A stretch of DNA of 64,000 nt from Styela clava (lineage: Eukaryota), in the NCBI RefSeq assembly GCF_964204865.1, contig NC_135261.1:18724001-18788000 (forward strand), read 5' to 3'. Both the position numbers and the translations under genes were made by a program. Below are positions 5,101 to 51,900 of this stretch, piece by piece. How positions within the stretch are numbered: the first letter of the stretch is position 1; every line of letters starts with the position of its first letter. The notes below the pieces were generated by a model. The model was not told the DNA's origin. It ran no database searches and worked only from the letters and a program-made list of their open reading frames with translations.

Positions 5101-6619
5101 CATAGGTTTCGTTTTTGCCCATCTATTTATCCGACTGGGAATACAATATTCTTTAAAACAATTCCAGTCGATATTTAGTATGTTATTGTTGCTACAATAA
5201 ATGCATGTGTAGTTCTAAGCACGTAAGTAGTTTGTAACTTTTATATCAGTAACGTTTCAACTTTTTGAAGAAGCACCGTAACTTTGTAAAATAATAAAAT
5301 CTAGCTCGATGTCTCTGGTTGAAGGCTTTTTAATCTGATGGCGCAATATTTGAACCCCCATTTACTGTCGAATGCGGGTCCCGGTATTCCATAAAATTGG
5401 TGAAATTTACGCAATGTGAAAATTTCGTCATTATTGCAAAAGTGTATCAGAGAATTGTGTGTCCATATTATAAATTGTTTTAATTCCAATCGTATATAAA
5501 TTTCTTCAGGTAAAATATACAGTATATACAGCAAATACCTGACATCACGCGATTTTGTCTTAGTATTGCTTGGTCGTAGAAAAAGTATACCCGTGCCATG
5601 CACAAACGATGATATTTATCGGCTTTGAAGTAGAAACATTCAGATTTCCGAATTAGACTGTTGTTGATATAAAGACAACGTTAAGTACTTTATTGTATTT
5701 ATTTGCCACCCTATGCTTGATTCAATATTTTGCGAGAAAATGAAAATTCATCTTGGCATGCTAAAATGACACACATTGTGAGTAGAATTTATGCTGTTAA
5801 GAAACTGCAATATCATTATTAATTTAAACTCAAAGTGTGCCAAAATAGTTGAAGACACCATCATGTTATTTACGAGGAACTCGGATAATTTAATATTATC
5901 ATGGCCTACAATTTTCGAAAAGTGTTACTTGACCAGTGATCTTGGTACAATTTAAACGAATCACTGATCACGAATCACTGTTTAAATTAATTTAATATCA
6001 AATCTAAGAAGCATTCATTTTTTTGTAGAGAAAATGATTAAGTCGGTTGGTATGGTTCAGAACTAAAGTATTTCACACGAGGATTTCAGTGAATTAGCTA
6101 AAATTTTAAAATTGAAAATGAAATGTGTCACGTCCGCTATCAAATTGTGATATTATATTTTACTCATGACTTATGAAATAATATCCAAGTGTCATAAAAT
6201 TATTCGATTAAAGTGTAGAAAACAATAATATTGAATTACAATGTATACTTTCGATATGGCGAAATATAAGATATGAAGAATATTAACTTACGTAATGCCT
6301 GATCAGTAATAATTTTTGAAAAGAAAACGCCGCCCACTGTTTATTTGGTGGTTCGTAGCAGACACAAACATAAACGGAAGGTACATATATATGTCTATCT
6401 ATAGATTGTTTACTTGACAAAAAGTATTGTATGAGCATAAAATGGAATAGTTGAAGTATTTTTGGAGGCAAGAATCATAACAGTTTCTATATAACTTTCA
6501 TAATTGCGTTCTATTGTATTTTTCGTACCTTACATAGTTTTATGACGTACGAAGTCTATCTTACGCCCTTTTCTATTGAAAGGTGAAGAAAAATTTCAAA
6601 CTTGGATTTAATGACCACT

Positions 6620-6725
6620 TTTATTGGTCAGTGTGAAATAGTTAAATATATTTCTGACGATTGCTTCTGATTGGAGGCGAGAATGACGACACGGAGTACG
6701 TGATACATGAAACTCCGCCAATACA
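6620..6725 (+). promoter_or_regulatory. Candidate Wnt6 proximal promoter with three CCAAT boxes
   Basis: ATTGG at 6623 and 6670 and CCAAT at 6718 (47-48 bp spacing), in a locally CpG-containing stretch about 300 bp upstream of ATG 7014. Confidence 0.35.
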
Positions 6726-7013
6726 CTTCGAGTTTGTTTGCAATAATTCATATGTGGATATATGCATTGCTGAGTGAACTAAGTCGTGGGGACTAAAAAT
6801 TGAGTTTCCCTGCTTTCAGGTGGAAGAAAGACTTAGAAAACAAAAAGGATTTTGGCGATATCGACGACGCTCTATGCTGAGATTTTAATTACTGCGTTAG
6901 CTAAGTGAAGCTTCTAGACACAGACTAACGACGCTTGTTTTCAAATTTTGGAATCTTGTTCTGGTAACTTATCCCAGGAGACTGTAAATTACAGCGGAGT
7001 TAATCAGGTTGAT

Positions 7014-8158
7014 ATGACTGAATTAGTTCCAACTTTTTGCAGTCGGTATACGCGCTCGTCTGTCAACACTAGTAAAGGGAAAGTTCAGGCTCGAAGTTCT
7101 TCCCCTTTACAACATGATGTCAGATGTTGCAAAGAGCTTGCATTGTTTATTGGAAACCACATCCCTGAAAAACTGTCTAGTCGAGAATTAGAGTGGTATT
7201 GGAAAGATGAAGAGAAAATGCTGCACTCGCAACTGCAGGATAACATAAACTTCAGATATCAGTCCTCGGATCAGTCGGGTGCCGTTCGCGGTTTGCCGCA
7301 AGATAATTTTAAAAATTTGCGGCAAACGTTATCAACCACAAATCAACTATGGTGCGTTAGATGCGGTGGAATGATACCAATGCACTCATCAACCACCACG
7401 ATTCGGAAACCTTGTCCGGTTTCCGAATCCAAATTTAACCGTGACAAACGCACATCCATCAAGTTCATAAAACAAAGTACGGAAAATGAGAAATCTTCAA
7501 GAACGAACTGTCGTTTGCAGAAAAATTTCACTTCAAATTTGGCAGACAAAAGCTTGTCATTCCAAAATCAATGCGAGAGCATATCAGAAGAAATTTTTTT
7601 AAGTCGAGGGACAAAAGACTCTAAAAAGTTTGTTGAAAATAAATGGCACAATTGCAGCAATATGTGTAAAAGAGAAAGCGAAAATTTTCAATGCCAAAAA
7701 CACGGATATAAAAATATTTATCAAAGGGAGTTTATGAAAATAAACAAATTAGCGAATGAATTTATCAGTTCAGAATCATCTGGAAGGTCTACAACTTCTG
7801 GCAAAAAGGCTAAGCTCAACAAAAGTTTAGTATCGTCTACAAATATTAAAGGTTCTCAAACTTTACCAACAACGACGTCCAAAAGCCTTCTTAAAAACAG
7901 GCAAAATTTAAGAACAAAATCCCTTTTTAAATCGGATTTACAAAATCGTAATAAAAAAGAAAATTTGAAAACTATTCAATTATTCAATCTATCACGTCTA
8001 CTTATGACTTGGATTATTGCATTACTTGTCGGTTTTTTGAACGCTGGACGAATTCTAACCGGAACTATCATATCTCATAAAAATTCGAAGGGATTAGTAT
8101 CGAGGCGTGCTGTATTTGTGTTGTGGACATTGATCGTTTTACCTGGAGATTCAAAACG
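7014..8158 (+). CDS. Wnt6: Wnt6 exon 1: long N-terminal extension plus two hydrophobic segments
   Basis: A 404-codon stop-free frame (6948-8162) in very AT-rich DNA, with the first in-frame ATG at 7014. It ends at a consensus donor CG|GTGAGT (8159) in phase 2, matching the acceptor at 17550. The end of the exon encodes LLMTWIIALLVGFLNAG and AVFVLWTLIVLPG. Confidence 0.7.
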
Positions 8159-11100
8159 GTGAGTACAACTTTATTTTCATTATTTATAATTTTTTCCAGC
8201 ATGCAATTCAAAATTGATGTGTTGAAATATCAAATACCTTCACAGGTGATTCTGATAATATTTCGCTTACAATTTCTACGTGAAATAAGTCAAATAGGCA
8301 AAATAAATATGGTTTCAAATGACCAAGAATGACATAACAAACACTTCGATGTATATGCAATAATAATTTTAATCAATGTGTTATTATCAAATGTTTGGTT
8401 CCTTCTCAAAAAAATATTAGGCTTGAAATGAAGTCATGAATTTATAGCGATAGAAAAGCAATGTCTCGTCTCACCCGCCTCACATTTTACTAGTGAATCA
8501 TAATAGCAGTAATCATATAGCTTTGTCTAGTGCTATCCAAGAAACTTACTTATTTGCACCGATGCTGTTTCTTTAAAATAAACACCGAGGACCTCACGTG
8601 TATTAGCCTGTGATATTCTAAAATTTATACCACAAATCTGGTTTTTGGCGAGAAAAAGTATATAAGCGGATTAGATTTGATAAAATCTAGACACAGTTTG
8701 TCACTATAAACAATGCTGATAACATTATGTAATGTCTATGTAGCAGATTACAGAACAGCTTATAAAGTTTAACTAATTTGAATACCTATGAGATGAAAAT
8801 AGATTTTGAGTAACCGCTACATCGTTCTTACCACGCGTTCTTCCGTATCCGTTGGCAATTTCAGCCTTCCATTTTCGGAGATTTCCAAATAAAAACATTC
8901 CAACATTCCTTTCTGTCAATAACTCTACTCTTCGGGACCCTTAAATGAATTTATTTGTATCAACTGAAACTTATTTGGTGAAGTAAATGCTGATTATATC
9001 TTTCAACCTTGGGTTGGGGTAGTTGATACCAGAAAATATTATCTACTAGAAGCGTAAAACATTTTTTTTTAATTTCATGGCGATAAAAATTGTTATGTAA
9101 ATATTGGAAGTGTTAGTAATTTTTTAATATGTAGAGAGACTGGGATGTTTCCCAATTTCATTCAAATCAGCTATCACCTATGTAATTAACGATTGAAACC
9201 ATGCATATCTATTGGAAATTTCCACCAGTCAGTGTACGTGCAAAATTCTAACGAAAAAATGAAATGTATTCAAACGTAGACGTTAGTGGACGCAATTTCT
9301 AAGTAGGCATAAATAGGTTTATAGGTGGGAATAGGTATCCTAGTTCGATTTGATCAAATACTTATAGGCTATACAAGCATCCTAAATTTTAATCAGAAAA
9401 ATATCTCCAATAAAACCTGTCAGTACTTGTGTAAATAATAAACCGTCTTATATAGGAATTGGCAATTTACTTCAGTCAAAGCTTCTGTCAAACTGTTTCT
9501 AGCGTTTGAGACCTCTGCAAACGCAGTGAGCATACTCAAAACATTCTGGTTTCGTCTGTGGTGACATGCAGCTTTTTTAACTACGCTATGAAATTCAAAA
9601 GCCACGTCAGTGTGTGTGTATACATGTTGTATTCCTCATTGACTGATACTTAACTATAGCTAGAGTACCTTGGTTATATTAGTGTGGAGATCTATGATCA
9701 AAACAAGAAATAAGGATAACATGATGCAGTCAATCATCACTTCTAAATCTCTATTTCCGGAAGCTATGTGTCTTGAATCGTCCCCCGAATTTCCCAAGGG
9801 AATGAAGCTTAATTTACAACCTACTATTAACAGTGACGACATGTTTCTGTGGTCGCTTCGGGACACATTTAAAATCTGGCTGTGTAGTGGTGTAAGCTAT
9901 ATACTTACCAAGAATAAAATTTATATATACTCTATTTACAAATGGCTTTGCTACGTTACAACTCAAACGCGTTCAAGATATATTTTGTAGTGCTATTCAA
10001 CACTATTTACATCATTAATATTGAACGCAAATTACCCGCGGTATTGCATCTTTGTTTATGAATTCACACTAACCGTAATAAACAATATCTAGTTAGGGAC
10101 GAATTTAGACAATGAGAGGCCCTGGACCATGGAGGGGCATATTTTATGAGGATCCTCTTTAACACCGACGTCAATTTGTTTTATGGAAATCCATTGTGGC
10201 GCAATACTAGGCTTTTCATGATCCATATAAATTGATTAAGACGTCATGAATAAATTTTACAGGCAAGGTACGGTGCTCTAATAACCTAGGCAAAAATACT
10301 GAGTTGATTTGAACAACACTTTCAGACTTTAAGTTAAGAAACTCAAGGCTATACCAAAACGTCCAGAGGACCGGAGAACCAACGTCATGATACCCGATTC
10401 TAGTCGCGAGAAGATGTGGGGGTGCTGGGGTTATCATTGCCTAATTACTGATAAATAAACTTAACATTCCAGCTTTTTGACATGAATGGTTCTGCGATAA
10501 AATGATCCCAAATTAGGTGAAAAAATACAATGATTCTAAGATTCATTGTTTCTTTAATAAATGAGTATAGCTTTATATCGATAATCACCGTACCATCATT
10601 CAGATAAAAACTGTTCAATTAATTCAAATTAGCGTGTTTTGTTTTTAAGATAAATGAGTAGAACTTTTCAAATTGAGACAATTTTAGTTTTAGACCTTTT
10701 TAATGGCAAATAGTTTTTAAAAACACCTTGAAAATGAATGACCGTTCATAATTGATAATGTCTAATTCAGCAAACCTTCCCTAATGGTGAATCCAGCTCT
10801 AGTTGTAGTATCAAAAAACTTGTCATACGCAACTTCAGCAGTCGTGTTTCAGTCAAGTGAAAGCCCGTTTGAAAAATATAACAGCTTCACAATCAGAGCT
10901 GATCAAAATTTTCATTTTACAATTTTGTTTTGCTGGAACCACGCTCTCAATTTGAAGGTAGTAATAATTTGATTAGTACAAAATACTGCATGTGTGAATG
11001 CTGTAGGGCGGTAGGTGAACTATGATCTACTCAAGTTCAAAGGTTATTATCGCGATTGTCGTCCGCGTGAACGACTGAGCAGCTTTTAGTTTTAGGAAGA

Positions 11101-17100: not shown

Positions 17101-20100
17101 TAATTTTTTTTTATTTGTGTATTGAAATATTGTTCAAAAAGCCGATAAGGATATAGACGATGATCTGTCTGTCTGTCGGTCAATGATATATACATGTCGG
17201 GTATGCAAATTGTTTAGACTTTAAAAATAAATTAATATTAAATAAAAAACTAAACAAACTTCAAGGGTCAGATCGAATTCGTAACCGTATAACATCAGTT
17301 GTCATGTGTATCATGTATCATCAAGGCGGTATCCAGACTCTGCCAAAATTAAATTCATAGTTCTGAAATACTTCTTCACCAATAATCATTCATGCTCTTA
17401 AAATCCGACACAAAAATTAACAGTGAAGTTTTTGTGAGGGAGACTAGAAAAATCACTCAATTCCGTACAATTGTATTCCCTTTCGCAATAATTTGCATTA
17501 TTAGATTTTTTAATATCTCTTTGAATATATATATTTTCTTTATTTTTAGAGTCTTGGGAAATTCATTACTCGTAACGCCAAGTCAATTTTGCACAAGAAC
17601 AAGGTTTTTAAATGCAAGACAACAAGAAATTTGTAGGAATCATTCCCATATTTTAAAATACGTAAGTAGAAATTATAAGAATAATAGAATTTTCACACAA
17701 AGAAAATTTAAGTTTTAGATTCATAAAGTCAAGAAATCTGCTTGCTATTTAATTAATTTCTTTGTTTGTTATTTTTTACACGCTCCCATGTTTAGTATAG
17801 AAATTAAAAATAAATTGTAAAATTTGGGAGACTCTTTTATGTACAACATTGTACACACAATATTACATTAAATCAACTCTCTAACCACCAAACTAATCTG
17901 AAATGCTCTAATTTCAAAAGAATTGAAAGATTTAAAGTTCTGTGAAGAACGATATTCGTCGTATTTAAATATTGATTTCGGATTTCTCGTTTCATGGGCC
18001 ATGACAGTCTATAAAGATCATTATAAAAGTGTGTTGAAATTGTGCATGTTATGATTTTCATTTTCTTACTCGGCCATTCATTAATTTTGCATACCAATTT
18101 TATTGGGTCGAGGGCCATTTGGAATAAAATGAAATACTACAGATCTAAGGCAAAAATGCAATTACTTCTAAACTTCCGATAGACTTGAGTGATATATTGT
18201 TACGTGTTCTATCTAATCAAGGAAAATATTGCAGGTTGAAGAAGGAATAATTCAAGGTTCACATCGTTGTCAAAGAGAGTTCCAGTATAATAAATGGAAC
18301 TGTTCGAGATCTCCTAAAACATATTATAGTCGCTTGTTGAATCAAGGTTAGTCAGATATTTTTACCTGTAGTTACCGGCTTTTAGTAATTTGCTATCTAA
18401 ATGTACTTCGCAAAAGCCACACTCATACGAAATTTCAAGCAGATGTGCCTGGCCAAAAGGTCATGCGTTTCCATCTGTGTAATTTTATCTTCATTTTACA
18501 TCGTATGATGTTTTGATTGATAAACATTGAATTGATTTTTGTTTAAATTTGTATAGTACAAAACACACAGTGTTGTTGAGCACATTTCACTTGTTTCGTG
18601 CCTTCAAACTAGCTATAATTTCAACTACAATATATTCGATGTTTTTTATTTCTCCTATTTAGGCAGATGAAAGTTGTCTTGTAAAAATATGCGTGTGGAA
18701 TTTAGTTGTTTATTTGTCTTACTGAGATTAAGAGCTACCAATGTGTTAATCCGCCAAGTCGTTTGTTTTCTATGGCTGGATAAATGTGGGCCTTGATTAA
18801 AACAGTTTTCAAATAGGCGTAAACACTTTTAAAACACGATATTATCTATGGGTGTCTCCGGGAATAAGATTTAATAAACTAAATTCATAATATAAAAAAT
18901 TAATTTGTTTTCCTAATCGTCACGATTTGACTAAAAATATGTGTCGTCGATTTTTACTTTTAAAAATAAATTCCCCACGAAATTATTATCATTTAGAATC
19001 GATGTCTTGAGCCACCTGCTTAAATTTGATCAAATCATTTTGACATGACCTACGACCCAAATGGATAATAGATTGTCCATTTGTTGCAGATTTATAAAAA
19101 AAAATCTTAGAAGATATAATTTGAAAAATTGTTTATAATTGGACTAACTAAACTAAAATATCATTTTAGATAGTTTTTATTTTCGTTGTGAATACATTAC
19201 ATCGCGCAATTAAAAAACAATTTTATCTCAAATCTTGGAATTTACTATATAGGTATAAGTGTATGGAAACCTAATTAAGTTTATTATGTGTATTTGATGT
19301 AAAAAGTGAAAAACAACAAAATTTTGAGCATTGTTCACATTGTACATTCTATAAACATAAATAAAACCCATTAAAAGATTTCTAACAGAAATTGTGGTTA
19401 GTTATATGTCAAGTTGTTTAATGTATCGTCTCCCAGAACAAGATATTTCATATTTTTAAGACCACCTATAATGTTTGGAGTGAGATCCAATTTCGATAAA
19501 TATTTCTCAAATATAATACCATCGCAAATAAAAATATTTCTAAATACTTATCATTTTGTTGTTCCGCAGAATCGTTTATGCTATATCTTGTTTTTAGAAA
19601 CACGAGTGCAAAAAGCGAGATAAAAATATTTTTTTAAAGAAATGAAAAGCACGTAATCGTGAATTCCCTTATATAGAACATATTTTATTATTATTTTTTG
19701 TGGATTTTACCTTTTTATGTGATAGAATGTCTTTAGTTTTTTGATTCAATCGCATCTGAAATTGATGTTTATCAATTATGTAAATTTATTTTTATGGGAT
19801 TTTGGTCAGCTGGCAATAGAACCTGACCGCATCATTGTTGATGCATCATTCAAAAAGGTACAGTATAGGACACTTCTAGTTGAAGCTAACAAAATAACTA
19901 AATATTATTATGCGATTGAAATACGTTCAATTGCAGACCCACTTTATACCTGTATATTACTGAGCCAAGACCAAACTACTTAATCACAAAGTTAAGCTAG
20001 ATCACTTTTAGGTCGAACCTAAAACTTATAAAGTTGATTTATATTTCATGGAGTTTTTATTCAATGAAATGACTATCAATATTCCCAACTAATAAGATTT

Positions 20101-23100: not shown

Positions 23101-26100
23101 TTTCCTCATAAAATATAAAAAAAATTTTGATCATTTCCGAATAAATGAATAAAAATTTGAAAAGCAGCTTTTTATTTTCTTCAGTCGTGTTTGAGTTCAT
23201 CCAAAGGTTTTATTAAGACATTTCTGCTGGCAAAAGAAAAAATATTATGTTATAAATATTAATATTAACCAATATCAATTAATAATAATTTCAGTATAAA
23301 TAATTTTGAAGGAATAATATAAATTCGAAAGTTTGCAAATATTTGAAACATGTTTTTAACGTATCTTTGTAACTCAGACGTGTTTTGTATAAGCATATAT
23401 ATTTGATACGACTTATTTATCTTAAAACATTAATAGACGACAATATATGTGGTGTAAAACATTTTTTATAGTATATCGGTATCAATTTACGTAAAGATGT
23501 ATATAATTCCATAAAAGTTTGTTAGCGTTTAGGCAAGTTCGTTTCACATTTGTCATTCATGGGTTATTGAATAGTCGATTTTGATAAAAGACAAATCATC
23601 CACCATTATACGAGGAAAAAATAAATCGACCAACTCTTAAGAGATTCATACAGAATGATAGCATCGCAGTCATATAATTTTCTACCACGCTGCTCTTCAT
23701 TTTTACCGATACTGCGATTGATTATCGCATGCAACTTCAAACAGAGTTGGGTCTTCCTCACTGAGTGCTCGTGACCTGAATTTTAAATTATTGTTATTAT
23801 ACATATATTGAAAGGCTGTAAACTTGCTTCTATACTCGCTCATCCCTGATTCTTATTGGTTCAATTTTGTTTAGATATTCGAGAAACTGCATACGTTAAT
23901 GCAATGATGTCAGCGGCAGTAACTTACGCTGTGACGTACGCGTGTTCGAAGGGCGAAATTCCAGATTGCGGATGTGAAGAGAATTCGATCACAAGTTACG
24001 AATTACTCAAACAAGTAAGTTAGAATATACATCTGCTAAATTAAGGTCAAAGGCCGAACGTTTTGTTTTTCACCTGTCATGGTGGCACCCAAAATCATTC
24101 GATTGAGTATTATTTTAAAGTATACAAAATTATATCCATGTTTATAGGAAGCTATAAAGCGCAATTACAAAACTACTGAGGAAAATCTTCGAAAAGTTGC
24201 AGCAGAATTTGAATGGGGAGGTTGCGGAGATCAAATTGAATATGGAGACAGAATTTCCAGACTTTTCACAGAAAATTTTGGCAGAAAATTCCAAAGTAGT
24301 GACCTCAAAGCTAAAATTGAAATACACAATATGGAAGCTGGAAGGCTGGTACGTAGAATTATACTTTTCATTCAAACATATTGTCATAGTATACAATCGT
24401 GAATTATAATTAAGGAGCATACAATATTATTTCAATTGAAAATTGAAGTTTCAAACATTACCCTCTTTGGATGAAGTGTTTAAAGTAGAGGTTCCCAGTC
24501 TTTTATGGCCCTTATCCGACTTTCATCACTCATGCCGCCCCTGTTTAAAATTTTAATGGTATTTATAGTGTTGTTTTTATTGGTAGATTCCAAATCCCAT
24601 AACGTTCAAAATATTCATACTCAACAAAGTAAAAACACTCGGTGAAATAACCTCATCAAGCAACAAAACTAAAAAAAACGAGCAGTTTTCTTGGTAAAGG
24701 TAAACCGCGCCCAGCATTGTGACCCCCCTTAAACTGCTTTGTGTCCCTCTTGGAGGCCACGGGCCTCCGGTTGGGAACACTGATTTAAAGCATAAAATTT
24801 GATGCTATCGTATGGCATTTTTATGAACGCGAAAGATTTCGAAATACTGCATCTAAATAGGCTTTCAAATTGATAATTTCCGTTTTATTTTGACGGTTTG
24901 AAATCTATTAACACGTTCACAAAATAATATTCTGTACTTGGAATTATGATACTTGATACTCAGTTAGGTATGACAGGATCGAAACGTGATATAAATCATG
25001 GAGACCGAATAGTAATAATAATTTTATCAGACCAAAGCAATGATTATGATTAAAAATTTGGGCTCAATTACAAATTTTATATATATGTTTGTACTGGTAC
25101 GTTTTGTTGCATCTTCTATGTTTAGTAAACGTGCTACGCCAGTGAAAAAAAAGATAAAAATAGTCGGGGTATGCGAAAAATGTTACTGATCACAAGTTTA
25201 TTCATATTTTACAAATATTCAGTATCACAACAAATACTTTTTAGTGTGTATTATCAGATATATAGTAGAGATAATTTCCGTAATTTTCAAAAAAAGAGAA
25301 TTAGGAAAGAGAGTGAACATTGCAAAAAAAAATTTACGCCGATAATTAGGAGAAAAAAATGCTTCGTGTACGAGCCAAATTTGATGTCGGATCTGATGTT
25401 TGAATGGAGCAAATTCATTTTATGAATGAAAGAACATTCATTCTAGTGGTGTGGCATTGTGTAATAGATTGACCAGTTTTGAAAATAAAATGATAAAAGC
25501 CAGTCAATTTCGGGCTCAAATTCGCCTTACCATATAATAAAAGATAGCCTAGAACGCCAACATGAATATTTTTTTTTAATTTTTGCATTTCATTTCAGGC
25601 AATAACAAATCACATGAGAAGAGATTGTAGATGCCACGGAATCACAGGTACTTGTGCATTGCAAACTTGTTGGGATAGAATGCCGAAGTGGCAGGATGTT
25701 GGTAACCGATTACGAAACCATTTCGATGGTGCGGTTCGGGTACAACTGGCAAACGACGGCCGTTCTCTGCTACCAAAACGGAAACAACGAATTGCACTAA
25801 AACAGTATCCATATCCGAGAAGGCCTTATCCAGATGCGACATTGAACCGGTATAAGCGCAATTCTCCAGAAATTTATACCACTCGAACCAGCACCGGTGC
25901 AGCAAACATAGAAAGACGTGAAACAGAGAGACGAAGACGACGAAGAAAATTTAAGACTAAGGGTCTGAGACGTCGAAGAGGCGGAGATCGTGGGAGCGCA
26001 CTTGAGGATGAAAACCTAGTGTACTCTCAAGAATCGCCAGATTTTTGTAAGAGAAATCGGAAAAATGGAAGTTTGGGTACCATAGGTCGAAGATGTATAC

Positions 26101-26264
26101 CGAATTCTACAGGAGCTGGGAGTTGCGAATATTTGTGTTGCGGCAGAACTTATCAAGAACACGTTATCACAGTAACGAAGGACTGCAATTGCAGATTTGA
26201 ATATTGTTGTAAACTAGTTTGCGATAAGTGCACGTCGCAAGAAACTGTTCATACTTGTGACTGA
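7014..26264 (+). CDS. Wnt6: Wnt6-like secreted signalling protein, 6 coding exons: 7014-8158, 17550-17661, 18235-18346, 23875-24014, 24148-24348, 25599-26264 (791 aa from ATG 7014; 461 aa from the alternative ATG 8004)
   Basis: The exons join in frame through GT-AG introns (phases 2,0,1,0,0). The translation has 24 Wnt-pattern cysteines and the motifs CQREFQYNKWNCS, DIRETAYVNA, FEWGGCGD, HNMEAGRL, CRCHGITGTCALQTCW, NDGRSLLP, LVYSQESPDFC and CEYLCCGR. DIRETA, GGCGD, SRLF and NDGxxLLP match recalled vertebrate WNT6. The start codon is uncertain. Confidence 0.9.
13274..13908. mobile_element. Non-autonomous hAT (Charlie-like) element
   Basis: 15-bp TIRs CAGGGTCGTCCAACC / GGTTGGACTACCCTG and 8-bp TSD TCCTAGAT/TTCTAGAT (NTCTAGAN-type target). 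Confidence 0.85.
17550..17661 (+). CDS. Wnt6: Wnt6 exon 2 (VLGNSLLVTPSQFCTRTRFLNARQQEICRNHSHILKY)
   Basis: TTTTTAG acceptor and GTAAGT donor. Encodes the first two Wnt cysteines, similar to WNT6 AVGSPLVMDP..IC...QAELC. Confidence 0.9.
18235..18346 (+). CDS. Wnt6: Wnt6 exon 3 (VEEGIIQGSHRCQREFQYNKWNCSRSPKTYYSRLLNQ)
   Basis: TTGCAG acceptor and GTTAGT donor. Contains the Wnt CQxxF..WNCS motif. Confidence 0.92.
21063..21274. mobile_element. MITE family A, subfamily B
   Basis: Same termini and GAACTAAAATAAGGAAA..TTATGGCCTAACCCTAAC core as family A. Reverse complement of the copies at 33654 and 63567. Confidence 0.82.
23875..24014 (+). CDS. Wnt6: Wnt6 exon 4 (DIRETAYVNAMMSAAVTYAVTYACSKGEIPDCGC...)
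   Basis: TTTAG acceptor and GTAAGT donor. Contains the RETA..A...A...AVT.ACS.G...CGC Wnt motif. Confidence 0.95.
24148..24348 (+). CDS. Wnt6: Wnt6 exon 5 (...FEWGGCGDQIEYGDRISRLF...IHNMEAGRL)
   Basis: TATAG acceptor and GTACGT donor. Contains the WGGC and HNxxAGR motifs. The reading frame differs from the listed ORF 24197-24409. Confidence 0.95.
24486..24782. mobile_element. hAT (Charlie-like) MITE in Wnt6 intron 5
   Basis: TAGAGGTTCCCA / TGGGAACACTG termini and TSD GTTTAAAG/ATTTAAAG. Confidence 0.72.
25599..26264 (+). CDS. Wnt6: Wnt6 terminal exon 6 (thumb hairpin, expanded linker, cysteine-rich C-terminal domain, stop)
   Basis: TTTCAG acceptor. Matches ORF 25614-26264 and ends at TGA 26262-26264. 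Confidence 0.97.
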   Translation, partial: AITNHMRRDCRCHGITGTCALQTCWDRMPKWQDVGNRLRNHFDGAVRVQLANDGRSLLPKRKQRIALKQYPYPRRPYPDATLNRYKRNSPEIYTTRTSTGAANIERRETERRRRRRKFKTKGLRRRRGGDRGSALEDENLVYSQESPDFCKRNRKNGSLGTIGRRCIPNSTGAGSCEYLCCGRTYQEHVITVTKDCNCRFEYCCKLVCDKCTSQETVHTCD

Positions 26265-45900: not shown

Positions 45901-48900
45901 GACTTGGACTGATAAACAGCCAAAAGTTCATGGTTTCTAATATGATTGAGACGTCCTAACGGCTTTCATCTCACAAGGATAAATATGAAAATCTATTCTA
46001 TCTTATTTATTTTACACATAAGATATTGAGTTACACTTACAGATTCTATTTCTAATCATTGTGTCTGTTATTGATATAGTTTTAGAGGAATGTCATTCAA
46101 ATTCAATTACCGATAGTTGCTTAGCACTTTCCGTACCTAGTCAGTTTTTTAATTTCCACCATTGAGAGCTACTGTGAAAACGAGCGATCTTCTCTCCTAT
46201 TTATTCTCTCTGGTATTTCTTTTTTCATTCAATTGGAAAAGGGGCAAATGTAGTGATGTCATCAGTTTTTGGTAACTTACCATAGATACACCAATCATGA
46301 GGGGATTATCTAATACAAACCAACTCATCAGTTAAACATAACTGTTTAACACAGACAAATCTACCATATGTTTTGGCGATATCGTTTTGTGGGTCGCGAC
46401 CTTATAATAACAAAATTTGATGATAATCTTTACATTTATTGCTTTTTTCTTTTCAGCACAATCCGCCTCATGTTTCTTTGGACAAGTTAGAAGTTTGGTT
46501 AGGACAACAACAATTTGACATGGATAGTGAAAATGAACCTTGTCATGCTACTTTGAGAATGACTAATCACACCAAAGGAAAAATTACCGCAATTTGGATG
46601 CAAGGTTTGTTTTCTGCCGTCTTTTTTTATTATGGTTGGAAGGTGTATTATTACATTGTTTCTTTGCTTTAACTATTTATTTTAACTATGGATGTTTAAC
46701 TGCTCCAACAGGAAAGTTTTCACAGAAATACCCAAACTGATTGTTTAATTTACTATTCCGAATGCATTTCAAAATATTATATTTCAATTTGCGAAATTGA
46801 TAGCCTAGCGGTTTATGCGCTTAAATTATTAACAGCGTTGGCATCACTAATTTCACATCTCGGCTTTAAGTGTCCACTAAGCGTAATAAATAAGGTGGGC
46901 AATGCTGAAACGAAATAATTTCAGACCCTTTCGACTTAATGGTAGAGGAAGCCGTGAACGACCAGCGGTTACGTAAAGCATCTTATAGCGGTGAGGAGTC
47001 CTGCAATCATAATTAACCCCCGCATGGGATGCGAACCTGCGAACCCATGCTGGGTAATCATAGGTTCGGTGGTGAGCGTATTCCCATTGCTTAGCATGAT
47101 GCGCCATACAGCTCGAAACATCATGTCAACTGAGAATTTAATATATTTGTTTCAGATCCGACTGGAGTTTTCGAATTAATTCCATCATCATGTGACATAC
47201 CACCATTGAAATCTACTGATTTCCGTGTTGTTTTCCGACCAAATGTCCCAAATCAATTTTTTGGAGCTGAACTAGAATGTTATGCATCTTACAAGGTAAT
47301 GATACTGTTCTACTGGTCATGATGATTTTTTTATTTTATACAAATCCAAAATTGTCAAATATTGTTTTACTTTTTATTTTGTTCACAGAGTATGCGAGAC
47401 TACAAGCTAGTTGATGACACAACCATTACTCCACCATGGTGTTTGACAGTGTCTGTGAGTGGACATACTTTCAGTGGAAAAAATAACACTTTTCTTCCTA
47501 ATGTAGAAATTGGAGCTAATGAACTGGTTAGTAAATGTTTCGGGTTATAGGGAAGATGTATGGAGAATCAGGATAAATTTGTCTCAACTGATCACTTTTC
47601 TTAAAAAACGTTTTTTTTACCTGGAATTGCTTTTTTATTTTGACAATATTTGATCTTTAACCTGAATGATGAAAAAAACAATAACACATAATATTCTGTT
47701 GTGCAAATTTTTATTTTAAGAACCTATCGATGAGTATCAAATTGAACCTTTTGCATTTTTGTGAAATATATTTATTCATAGTTCATTATTGTTGTCTGAC
47801 GTCGATGCGCATTTCCCATTTTTCAAATACTGCATCTGCCAAATATTGCGGTGACCACCAAGCAACCTGACTTGATTAATATATTCTTTTAGTTCTTTTT
47901 GCCTGTTTTGTTTTGTTCGAATTACTTACATAACTGAGAAATATTTACATTCTGAATCACAATTTGACTGTCAACAATATTTTTAGACATTTGCTGCAAC
48001 TCCTGACAATGAAGACTCTTACAGAACAATGCTGCTGAAAAATAACGGAACTACTCCTGTGTTATATCAATTCAATCAGGTAAGAAAATTTTGCTATATG
48101 GTTAAGTCGTTTTATCACCTTTCCTCTCTCTCGGGATAAATATGTAAATCCTATCCTAATATAGATAAAATATGTCACCTTAATCATAAATATACTGGAT
48201 ACGAAACTGTTAATAATGTTTCAATAAATTATCACATACTTCCATGTTTTCAGAATTCTGAGGAATCCAGTTTCACGATAAAACCACAGCAAGGAATGAT
48301 GAAATCCAAATACCATATATCAGTGTGTAGGTTAACACCAAGAAAAGTAGAAACTTACGAGTCTAAAGTTACTCTACGATTGAACGACAATGGAACACAT
48401 GATGAGGTAGGTTATGTAACCGCTGGTCGGTTGCAGCTTCCTCCACCATCAAGTCCATGCATCTGAAAACAAATACTGGTAACAGAATAACTAATCCCAT
48501 ACCCAACATGGACTGGTAACGTGGACTGGTAACTGGCTGTGGTTTGACATATGATTAAGCTTTCCTATTACTTTTCTCTGCCCCAAGATAAATATGTAAA
48601 TCCTACCCTAAATCATAATTGTTACTTGTTTGGTTACATGTCCCTGTCTTCTTGTACATTACAGCATCTAACTCTCATTGGAACTGGGGAACAGCCTGAA
48701 TTACTTCTGTCAAATTCTGGGGAAATGTATTTTCGACCAACTTGCATAGGAACAATGAATACAAACAAATACACTGTACAAAACACTGGTCGTCTTCCAC
48801 TAGGATTCATGTGGAAATTACAAAGCACTGACTTGACAAGATTGTCGGTGGAACCAAAATCAGGAGTCATCTATCCGAATGAAATTCAGGTAACAAAGAA

Positions 48901-51900
48901 AAGATATTTGAAGCAGCAATGGACAAATTTGACAAATTTTTTTATGATGATATCAAATACATTCAAATTGATGCAGTTTGAAAAACACTGTACTAATCAA
49001 TGCATATGCATAAAAATTGAATAAGATAATATGGAAAAACCAACCCAACAAACCTGGTTTTATTATTTTCTGTAGTTGACAGAAAACGTATAATTTGATA
49101 CTGATTCCCTTAATACTGTTTTATGAGAGGTTTTAAAAAATGGCATTTATCAAATTTGTAAATTATTACCTTATTCTTTCAACCATATTCATGGATTTGA
49201 AACATTTGCTGACTGTTCCTTTAGTATAATATGAATATTCCCTCTCTTGTTCTGATTATCGAGACAAATAATTTTACTTAACACTATCGCTGTTATGTAA
49301 GGAGCTAGTATTTTTGTATGAATTTATCAGCTTTCTCAATTTATTATATATTGGGGAGGTTAAAATGGGGTTTGAACCCAAGATCTTTAACCTGCCATGA
49401 CAATATAATCAGGTCTAACGCTCTACTACTAGGGTTGCCACCCATAAGGTTATAGAGACATCCACAACGATTTTCTCTTTGAAAAGTTTCTATACTCGAT
49501 TGCCATCTTCATTTCTTTCTTTTCATATTCAGAACCATACTTGGACTTACTCACCTGACATTCCAGAAAAAAGTTTATTCAAACCAGTTTGTTACACTTG
49601 GCCCCATAATAATGGCTCAGCAGAAATTACGTCGGTTGTTGATATTCCCATCAAAAATCGAAGAAAATTCACATTGAGAGTTATTGGAGAAGGACATACG
49701 GGAGAAATAAGGGTAAGCTTGCTTTGCTTCACTACACTGGTCATTTTTGCCTCATCGTGCTAAGCGCTAGTCATACACCTGCTATCGTATGTTTAAATCG
49801 AATGGCGGAAATTTTGTATGATAAGAGTGATAGACTCCTCGTAACTGCTGATCAATTTTGACTTCATCCACCGATAAGTCCATGCATTTATGACAAACAA
49901 CTAACTGATCAACTATTAAATCCATGCTTCTGAAAACAAATAACTGGCCAGCTAATCTCATACCATCCCATGGAATGGTAACCTGTCAAAGGCTGTGGTT
50001 TGCCATATGATTAATTCGTCTTACCGACTTTCCTCTTCTCTAGGATAAAGATGTAAATCCAATCCTATTAGCAAATTTGGCATGCAATGTAACTAGATGA
50101 GAGACTGTGGTTTGCTTTGTGATTGAGTTGTTGTATTGGTTCTCCTCTACCCCAGAACAAATATGAAAATCCTATCCTATGTGAAGAAAAAGTGTAATAT
50201 TGTATCAAATAAATCTTGTAAATTAGTATTTTGGTGCTTTACAGTATGAAAAGGGCTCAAATTTCATAATTGATTATAAGAATGGTTAGCTTTGGCTTTT
50301 TGTTTTAGGTAACTTTATATATGGTATCTTTTGAATTCAGGCTGAAAGATCTTCCATTGATTTCTCCTGTGTTATTTGTGGATCATCATCTACTAAGACA
50401 TTAGTTCTTCACAATGTGTCAAACTGTGATGCCAGATTTAAACTCTCTATCGAACAATTTGTCAACAGTCAGTATGGTGAAAATCCTGATGAAAAGTGAG
50501 TATTTCCATCAGTATATTCTTACATGTTAGAATGCGGGTGCGAGCGATGGCTTAGTGGTTAGAGCCTCTAACTATATTGTCATCAAAGGTTAAATATCTA
50601 GGGTGCAAATCCATGCCCAGCACTTCACCCACCTTGGAAAAATTGGTTAAAATGCCCAATATAACAAATTTTTCAAATGAAAATCATCCTGAGTCATCAT
50701 TTTGAATGTATTTGAAAATTCTGGATGTCCCTGGTTGGCACAAATTACATGTTATAAATCCTAATCAAGAATTAATTGTGTGCCTTTTTGTTTCTTACAT
50801 GATAATTTGGGAATTCGTTCGAAACGTCCTGATAAATTTTTGGTATACCATTTTGTAAAAGAAATATTTCAAAGTAATACACTTTTGTATTGGTGCGTAT
50901 GTGTGTTATGCAGTGAGAAATACAGTGAAAGACACTGATCTATGAGTGGATGAAGTTACTGCTTACTGGCAGCATGGATGGCCATTTCCGAATACTAAAC
51001 TATTCCGAATACATTCTAAAATAATGTTTTCGAATCTGGAATTCCGAATACATTCTAAAATCGAAAATAACTCATTTTTGTTTTAGTTTATTAAAACGCA
51101 GTATATTAGGAAATAAGCTTCAATAGAAATATCAGGATAAAGTCACAAACCAACAGTATATGTACACAAAGTAATTGATAGTTTATAGCCATCAATAAAA
51201 AATAATAGCAACTTTTGACACAGTCAGTTTATTAAAATTATTCACTTTGTACAAATGACCATATGAAAAGATAGCCACAGCAATCTGTGCCTAAAAGTAC
51301 GAGATAAACCGCCTGATGTATTTAATTTTATTACGTATTTTTGCAATCTTGCCAACTCGGTATCGCCGTTAGAAAAATCTCAAATAATGATATTAAATTC
51401 TGTTAAGTGTAGTGTATAATTCATTTCATACAATGAATATACATATGAAGTTTAGCAGTAAATTAAAAATACATATTCATCGCCGCGATTATGCCATCTG
51501 TTAAAAGAGTCGACTTTCACAACAAATGATATAACAATGAATATATATTTTTCTGTTGTGCAAAGTGATGAATTCGTGACCGATACGGGCATATTTAAAA
51601 TGTCTTGCTTTATTAATTTAATTGTCTTCAATTTAACCTGCGGTTGCGTCGACAAAATAAAATCCTCACCACTCTTATATACCATTGCAAACCGCGATCA
51701 TAAGAATAAAACGTGTGGTAAACTGCCCGATTAAATAATGTTCAGATCCATATTTTGCGAATTCGGCAAATATTTAGATGTAGGCCTACTTGTTAACAGT
51801 GACTCCGCTCAATCGAAATGCTGACACTCTGATTATTTTTAGATAAAACCGTTCGAAAAATCCATAAATCTGCTGTAACATCTCAGGGTAAAATTTATTT

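Follow-up and report, generated by a model that had tools for sequence, protein, structure and literature searches.

The window analysed here comprises 64,000 nucleotides of the Styela clava contig NC_135261.1 (positions 18,724,001 to 18,788,000 of the forward strand) and contains a Wnt gene whose first exon encodes an N-terminal extension of 330 codons together with two hydrophobic segments, H1 and H2. Unless stated otherwise, positions are those of the window. The gene lies on the plus strand and was modelled in six exons, all bounded by GT..AG splice sites; its 2373 coding bases specify 791 amino acids without an internal stop. Exon 1 consists of a 5' untranslated leader covering at minimum 6580–7013 (sequencing run X3 supports it from 6580 and run X1 from 6716), the extension (7014–8003), which was delimited by the stop-free frame and RNA contigs, and the stretch with H1 and H2. 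It ends at the splice donor GTGAGT (8159–8164) of the phase 2 intron 1, which was supported by contigs of runs X1, X3, and X9. Exon 2 (17550–17661), with the start of the mature Wnt (VLGNSLLVTPSQFC...), was placed by the RNA junction, the frame, and the splice sites, and exon 3 (18235–18346; …RCQREFQYNKWNCS…) by a motif scan and splice sites. Exons 4 (23875–24014) and 5 (24148–24348) were recognized from Pfam wnt matches and splice sites, and exon 6 (25599–26264) encodes the C-terminal half of the Wnt domain and the stop codon.

The exons were searched individually, and the joined coding sequence was only translated for its frame, length, and cysteine count. The last exon matched the Pfam wnt family (PF00110) with E = 1.1e-47 and 163.5 bits against a cut-off of 20.3, and exons 4–6 also matched Pfam wnt in a search of the genome itself. 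The Wnt part contains 24 cysteines in the 413 residues following ...LPG, given as a total count and not position by position. A database search with the last exon retrieved three unnamed fragments only, with identities of 24–52%, indicating that this Wnt is highly divergent; the two nearest (P0001 and P0002) stem from Logan contigs. The class assignment reaches the Wnt family only and not a named subfamily such as Wnt6, the name used in the initial annotation. At the Porcupine acylation site (25626–25655), where CHG-x-SGxC is expected, the sequence reads CRCHGITGTC, with threonine instead of serine. Within the last exon, a long and highly basic insertion (25776–26012; …RRETERRRRRRKFKTKGLRRRRGG…) separates the two halves of the Wnt domain.

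Open frame, transcription, and probable translation start of exon 1

The longest stop-free frame of the window occupies the plus-strand interval 6918–8159; it has 414 codons, of which 382 are counted from its first ATG at 7014. The next longest stop-free frames have 232 (the last exon of the Wnt gene), 158, 153, and 145 codons, in agreement with the initial annotation, which had singled out an unbroken exon 1 frame of more than 1.1 kb as an outlier for this DNA. At a stop-triplet frequency of 0.064, the chance expectation for a frame of such length in the window was estimated as about 2e-8; the G+C content of the window is 33%. Between 7014 and 8158, the other two sense frames contain 18 and 27 stops (5–7% of their codons) and the antisense frames contain from 11 to 29. 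Upstream of H1, in-frame ATGs are found at 7014, 7218, 7371, 7380, 7662, and 7734, and another one is located within H1 at 8004. No run of N was met in the sequence examined. Since no tandem repeats were found in the exon 1 stretch, and DNA-level as well as protein-level searches of the 377-Mb genome gave this one locus, an origin of the frame from a repeat or transposon was ruled out.

Nine RNA-like and four DNA-like sequencing runs of the same organism were found. Contigs, not reads, were placed on the interval 5800–9200, using one run from each of four studies: X1, X3, and X9 are RNA-like runs from three separate studies, and X10 is a DNA run. The X10 contigs covered the whole interval. The RNA-like contigs covered 6580–8158 (X3), 6716–8158 (X1), and scattered parts of the exon (X9), and none of the three runs covered 5800–6579 or intron 1 beyond 8158. 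Contigs of X1, X3, and X9 all departed from the genome at exactly 8158 and then read AGTCTTGGGAAATTCATTACTCGTAACGCC, identical to window positions 17550–17579, so that they derive from spliced RNA and the 8158/17550 junction is used. A single X3 contig of 2827 nt combines 6580–8158 with 1248 further nucleotides; as the six-exon model requires 1231 nt between the junction and the stop codon, this contig should hold the complete coding sequence. The depths of the X1 contigs, from 5' to 3', were 5.9, 7.0, and 8.4, with at least about 70% of the depth already present in the upstream part of the exon, and no RNA contig among those placed started near 7950. DNA contigs of another individual agreed with the genomic arrangement.

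Exon 1 ends as cg|GTGAGT at 8158 with the residues ...DSK-R, which bears out the SKR end described in the initial annotation, and exon 2 begins at 17550 after tttttag in a fitting phase (CG+A). The splice in phase to the second Wnt exon, predicted earlier from the letters of the genome, was thus recovered in three RNA-like data sets. The RNA coverage proposed as a check is present across 7014–8158 and the junction, and the assembled transcripts extend 5' to 6580, whereas a start of transcripts downstream of about 7900 had been named as grounds for rejecting the long form. The long frame is a true first exon of the Wnt mRNA; it is retained in mature mRNA and continues in phase into an intact Wnt. 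The frame's only stop, a TGA at 8160–8162, overlaps the donor; given no stop before the donor and RNA coverage ending at 8158, a stand-alone mRNA would be without a stop codon and 3' untranslated region, and a separate gene confined to the upstream frame was ruled out on these grounds.

In an mRNA beginning at 6580 or earlier, ATG 8004 is preceded by 23 other ATGs and stands in a poor context (cttATGa), where −3 is occupied by a pyrimidine and +4 by A; at ATG 7014, the −3 base is G. The six ATGs before 7014 open upstream reading frames of 3–29 codons, every one of which is closed before 7014. Given the number of preceding ATGs and the poor context of 8004, scanning ribosomes should initiate at 7014 or another upstream in-frame ATG. 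We infer from scanning rules that the long frame would be the main open reading frame of the observed mRNA, and its translation into a long precursor of about 791 amino acids appears probable. The in-frame ATG at 8004 noticed in the initial annotation is indeed present, at a position inside H1; initiation there would give a protein of 461 amino acids with a hydrophobic N-terminus. The layout, with in-frame ATGs upstream of a hydrophobic segment and one at it, is that of the dual proteoforms of the neuronal pentraxin receptor (NPR) and the C1q-like (C1QL) proteins.

The extension and its hydrophobic segments

The extension has the Ser/Lys/Asn-rich composition attributed to it earlier (S 13.9%, K 10.9%, and N 8.5%), 11 cysteines, and a net charge of +29. 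No homologue was found by phmmer among 1.84 billion representative proteins (0 matches at E ≤ 0.001), the ESM Atlas provided no usable match, and Pfam detected no domain, with DUF7571 (E = 0.19) failing its cut-off. In BLASTP comparisons with two paralogous Wnts, restricted to their N-terminal regions, E exceeded 3. In an AlphaFold2 (AF2) model built without an alignment, the mean predicted local distance difference test score (pLDDT) was 46, with values below 50 over most of the extension, for the larger part of which disorder or helix of low confidence is predicted. The sole confident stretch was a helix including H1 (mean pLDDT of 72–90 over residues 311–350, with the peak at 331–340). Across the extension, composition by codon position shows only weak periodicity and gives no clear verdict on coding status.

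Contigs of X1, X3, and X9 differed within the species at 12 nonsynonymous and 4 synonymous sites in 7014–8003. Relative to about 782 nonsynonymous and 208 synonymous sites, this corresponds to a ratio of nonsynonymous to synonymous polymorphism (pN/pS) of about 0.8, which is indistinguishable from neutrality because the sites are so few. The part with H1 and H2 contained one difference, a synonymous one. In X10, nine bases (7592–7600) were absent at full depth; the phase of this deletion polymorphism was checked, and it removes three codons of an Ile-Phe-Leu region with the frame kept. In the same run, a 55-nt assembly bubble was found at a run of five adenines (7521–7525), with a depth of 12.4 for the A5 arm and 7.3 for the A6 arm; the A6 insertion was absent from X1 and X3. 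From its orphan status and low constraint, the extension looks like a lineage-specific orphan that is barely constrained within the species. Its amino acid sequence may matter little, as suggested by the orphan status, the near-neutral polymorphism, and the probable frameshift allele represented by the A6 arm.

The individuals differed by 1.1–1.4% overall, indicating a highly polymorphic species. Upstream of the gene, at 6007–6027, X10 differed by six substitutions and four small deletions in 21 bases.

Residues 1–320 contain no hydrophobic segment (the maximum Kyte–Doolittle (KD) mean over 19 residues was 0.58), which upholds the earlier observation that no N-terminal signal peptide follows ATG 7014. 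The canonical expectation for a secreted Wnt, a primary product that opens with a cleavable signal peptide, therefore does not apply to the product of this ATG. Both hydrophobic segments were located as originally described, with a basic patch ahead of H1. H1 (LLMTWIIALLVGFLNAG, residues 329–345, 7998–8048) comprises 17 hydrophobic or neutral residues with a 19-residue KD mean of 1.82, and a crude, position-independent sum on the Hessa scale ranged from −0.1 to −1.0 for 15–17 residues. No other segment has the length needed to cross a membrane, and windows around H2 were unfavourable for spanning; type II anchor segments usually have about 18–25 residues, against 17 in H1. H2 (AVFVLWTLIVLPG, residues 366–378, 8109–8147) follows 20 residues later and includes a basic n-region (HKNSKGLVSRR), a core of 11–13 residues with an 11-residue KD mean of 2.86, and a c-region with P-G before the exon end.

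The genome has at least 20 Wnt loci. In paralogues with conventional first exons, these encode a methionine, 12–15 residues, a hydrophobic core, and a WW end before a phase 2 donor. In an alignment anchored at the exon end, H2 coincided with the signal-peptide cores of three paralogous Wnts. Because its position matches that in the paralogues and its build is classical, H2 is presumed to be the ancestral Wnt signal peptide.

The net charges were about +3 before H1, +5 in the loop between H1 and H2, and +1 after H2. By the positive-inside rule, a type II segment carries more positive charge on its N-terminal flank; H1 shows the reverse (+3 versus +5), and H2 agrees with the rule (+5 before and +1 after). 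The suggestion of the initial annotation that basic residues ahead of H1 would favour a type II orientation was not supported, as the N-side (+3) and C-side (+5) charges give no clear preference. The +5 loop would prefer the cytosol, which suits H2 as an N-in/C-out signal and suits H1 less as a type II anchor, for which the loop would be luminal. The proposed release by cleavage at SRR or SKR is speculative, since both are plain dibasic sites, unlike the furin motif R-x-K/R-R.

Possible fates of the probable long precursor

In the favoured explanation, ribosomes would initiate at ATG 7014 or a nearby in-frame ATG and produce the precursor of about 791 amino acids, in which the only elements for targeting to the endoplasmic reticulum (ER) would be H1 and H2, both internal. 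The 330-residue basic N-terminal domain cannot be translocated; the extension would remain in the cytosol as a basic, disordered leader whose exact sequence is little constrained. H2 would thread the Wnt domain into the ER, and a cut by signal peptidase would most likely follow ...VLPG, yielding an ordinary secreted Wnt and a leftover, membrane-associated N-terminal fragment. Permanent tethering via H1 would be the main alternative fate. Selection would chiefly preserve the open frame, as a stop would end translation before the Wnt domain and invite nonsense-mediated decay. A long frame in AT-rich DNA cannot survive without selection against stops, and as the residues look free to vary, the openness would be selected and the sequence would not; such a leader is consistent with the lack of homologues, the low pLDDT, the weak bias in codon position, and the pN/pS of about 0.8. 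A heterozygous frameshift allele would be a loss of function that is tolerated, or downstream in-frame ATGs would rescue it. For the whole chain, from an expressed Wnt through a long precursor and an internal signal to cleavage after H2, a probability of roughly 0.4 was assigned. The outcome in itself, with H2 used and cleaved to give a normal secreted Wnt plus a leader fragment, is regarded as a tentative expectation that falls somewhat short of even odds.

Several observations weigh against this explanation. H1 would leave the ribosome first and appears hydrophobic enough to act as a signal anchor; if it did, the basic loop and H2 would be luminal and cleavage after H2 would not be guaranteed. 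The A6 arm in X10 is a probable heterozygous 1-bp frameshift allele, so that either the extension is dispensable or the allele is a tolerated loss of function, and no other single observation argues as strongly for dispensability. Contigs do not reveal transcript starts, and de Bruijn assembly may fuse overlapping transcripts; next to the long mRNA, there may be a shorter one that starts near 7950. The explanation also does not account for the rise of a 330-codon frame in DNA with 33% G+C.

In a rival view, the working Wnt is made from ATG 8004, through shorter transcripts that start inside exon 1 or by re-initiation, with H1 at the extreme N-terminus, H2 cleaved, and the upstream frame wasteful or untranslated. 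The 461-residue product with its hydrophobic N-terminus is in line with this view, as are the orphan extension with its pN/pS of about 0.8 and weak codon-position bias and the probable frameshift allele segregating in X10, and the slight 3' rise in the depth of the X1 contigs leaves room for some shorter transcripts. However, the in-phase frame of 330 codons cannot persist in AT-rich DNA without selection against stops; ordinary paralogues have only about 15–20 open codons upstream of their starts. Moreover, most of the X1 depth lies upstream, no RNA contig begins near 7950, and the 23 upstream ATGs and weak context make initiation at 8004 by scanning from the long mRNA unlikely. This origin of the functional Wnt is considered doubtful.

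Under another explanation, the protein is a type II membrane-anchored Wnt in which H1 is inserted, the extension is cytosolic, and H2 and the Wnt domain are luminal or extracellular, with signalling in the tethered state or after later proteolysis. The RNA and frame evidence backs the long precursor that this explanation also requires. Of the hydrophobic segments, H1 comes first and is the longest, with a crude Hessa sum at or below 0 and a place in the confident AF2 helix, and the long N-terminal domain forces an N-in orientation, from which the H2 core is too short to span back; the charge balance around H1 is nevertheless unfavourable, H1 is short for a stable anchor, and H2 retains every feature of a cleavable signal peptide at the position of those in the paralogues, which argues that H2 is still used. 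In NPR and C1QL proteins, signal peptides become anchors when an N-terminal extension is added (10.1101/2024.02.16.580719), an engineered Neurotactin–Wingless (NRT-Wg) fusion demonstrates that Wnt function tolerates a type II tether at the N-terminus (PMC6563952, PMC6703709), and human WNT2B isoform 1 has been proposed as such a protein (PMC12264420). On the other hand, SKR and SRR fall outside the furin consensus, and the near-neutral polymorphism and probable frameshift allele speak against a sequence-specific cytosolic tail. The tethered form as an explanation of the locus is judged unlikely, and there is correspondingly little expectation of a 791-residue Wnt held by H1 with a 330-residue basic cytosolic tail, possibly switchable to a secreted form via ATG 8004 or proteolysis.

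A separate upstream gene or an assembly chimera, with the Wnt junction as read-through or artefact, is highly improbable: although de Bruijn contigs can fuse overlapping transcripts and the extension resembles no Wnt and no N-terminal region of a paralogue, the same junction was recovered in three studies and the genomic arrangement of this single-copy locus was confirmed by DNA contigs of another individual.

Other Wnt genes, known systems, and significance

At G000:C10:8809000-8993000, at least ten compact Wnt genes, distributed over both strands, form a tandem array, and the two first exons inspected in it are short, conventional signal-peptide exons ending in WW. Within the window, the interval 48551–49024 forms an open frame of 157 codons (…GEMYFRPTCIGTMNTNKYTVQNTGRLPLGFMWKLQ…); it probably represents an exon from another, unrelated gene that follows the Wnt gene downstream.

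A second Wnt is located about 80 kb downstream on the same strand (L002:3035-4141, corresponding to G000:C16:18831034-18832140), and such a neighbour fits conserved Wnt clusters without naming the gene. There, one open exon encodes about 290 Pro/Arg/Gln-rich residues before the first motifs of the Wnt domain (…CDEIKLTRKQRKLC…ECQHQFRFERWNCS); this region contains no hydrophobic segment, and its frame opens just after a possible acceptor, ttgcag. No signal-peptide exon was found within 3 kb upstream of this Wnt. Another Wnt on the same chromosome (L003:1687-2098, G000:C16:4047686-4048097) has a first-exon frame of 137 codons with about 105 Ser/Lys/Asn/Thr-rich residues ahead of the signal-peptide core (…FLKIVLFAHIFFLFLQFNSCRASPKWW|gtaagt). 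So many open codons have a probability of about 0.001 by chance, and the gene repeats the same oddity on a smaller scale; its N-terminal region showed no sequence similarity to the extension studied. The next exon of this gene adds about 145 residues before the Wnt domain. The inserts in these two genes seem to be of the Wnt5 kind.

Drosophila Wnt5 (DWnt-3) reaches about twice the usual Wnt length through a long and poorly conserved N-terminal region. This additional region follows a signal peptide at the N-terminus, is therefore luminal, and is removed as a pro-region, unlike the extension described here, which precedes the hydrophobic segments. Extended n-regions before a cleavable core are also present in Rem of mouse mammary tumour virus and in the arenavirus GP-C, where the leader remains after cleavage and has a function at other sites in the cell. 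Those leaders have 58–98 residues and are conserved, whereas the one considered here would have about 378 residues and looks barely constrained.

For a natural tethered Wnt, the literature searched yielded only the WNT2B proposal and the engineered NRT-Wg. Human WNT2B isoform 1 (Q93097-1) has been predicted in silico either to be a membrane Wnt of type II or to be cleaved just after its hydrophobic segment, and an alternative isoform is secreted (PMC12264420, citing Katoh 2005). Both in that protein and here, additional N-terminal residues stand ahead of the hydrophobic targeting segment of the Wnt, and an alternative N-terminus gives a conventional secreted form (PMC12264420). The WNT2B extension, as described there, has about 34 residues and a single hydrophobic segment, is conserved in vertebrates, and arises from alternative first exons (PMC12264420). 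By contrast, the present case involves a 330-residue orphan, one exon with several in-frame ATGs, and two hydrophobic segments; as far as PMC12264420 shows, a membrane-type Wnt is in both cases a proposal. In NPR and C1q-like proteins, an upstream in-frame start makes the signal peptide an anchor, and the downstream start gives a secreted factor (10.1101/2024.02.16.580719). Experiments demonstrated the NPR and C1QL extensions, which are short and in many cases begin at non-AUG codons, whereas the present extension is at least ten times longer and was read from the genome and transcript contigs. NRT-Wg is an engineered type II protein fused to the N-terminus of a Wnt, with Wnt function retained (PMC6563952, PMC6703709). 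It is artificial, and the natural gene may well encode a Wnt that is cleaved and secreted.

A transmembrane-type Wnt is not new as an idea; what is new is the size of the extension (330 residues, about tenfold) and its orphan, barely constrained nature. With regard to annotation, the gene model should begin at 7014 and not at 8004, and this gene will be truncated by predictors for which a signal peptide at the N-terminus is mandatory. Whether Wnts must leave the producing cell has long been argued, mainly with artificial tethered Wingless. A natural signal sequence located 330–365 residues into a Wnt provides a native test case for the use of an internal signal, for cleavage versus tethering, and for the fate of the leader. 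If the protein is tethered, it would be a native counterpart of NRT-Wingless, with a tail that could send signals back into the cell producing it. Even if the Wnt is cleaved and secreted, the locus would be a striking case of a frame kept open without sequence conservation and of a very long internal signal on a morphogen.

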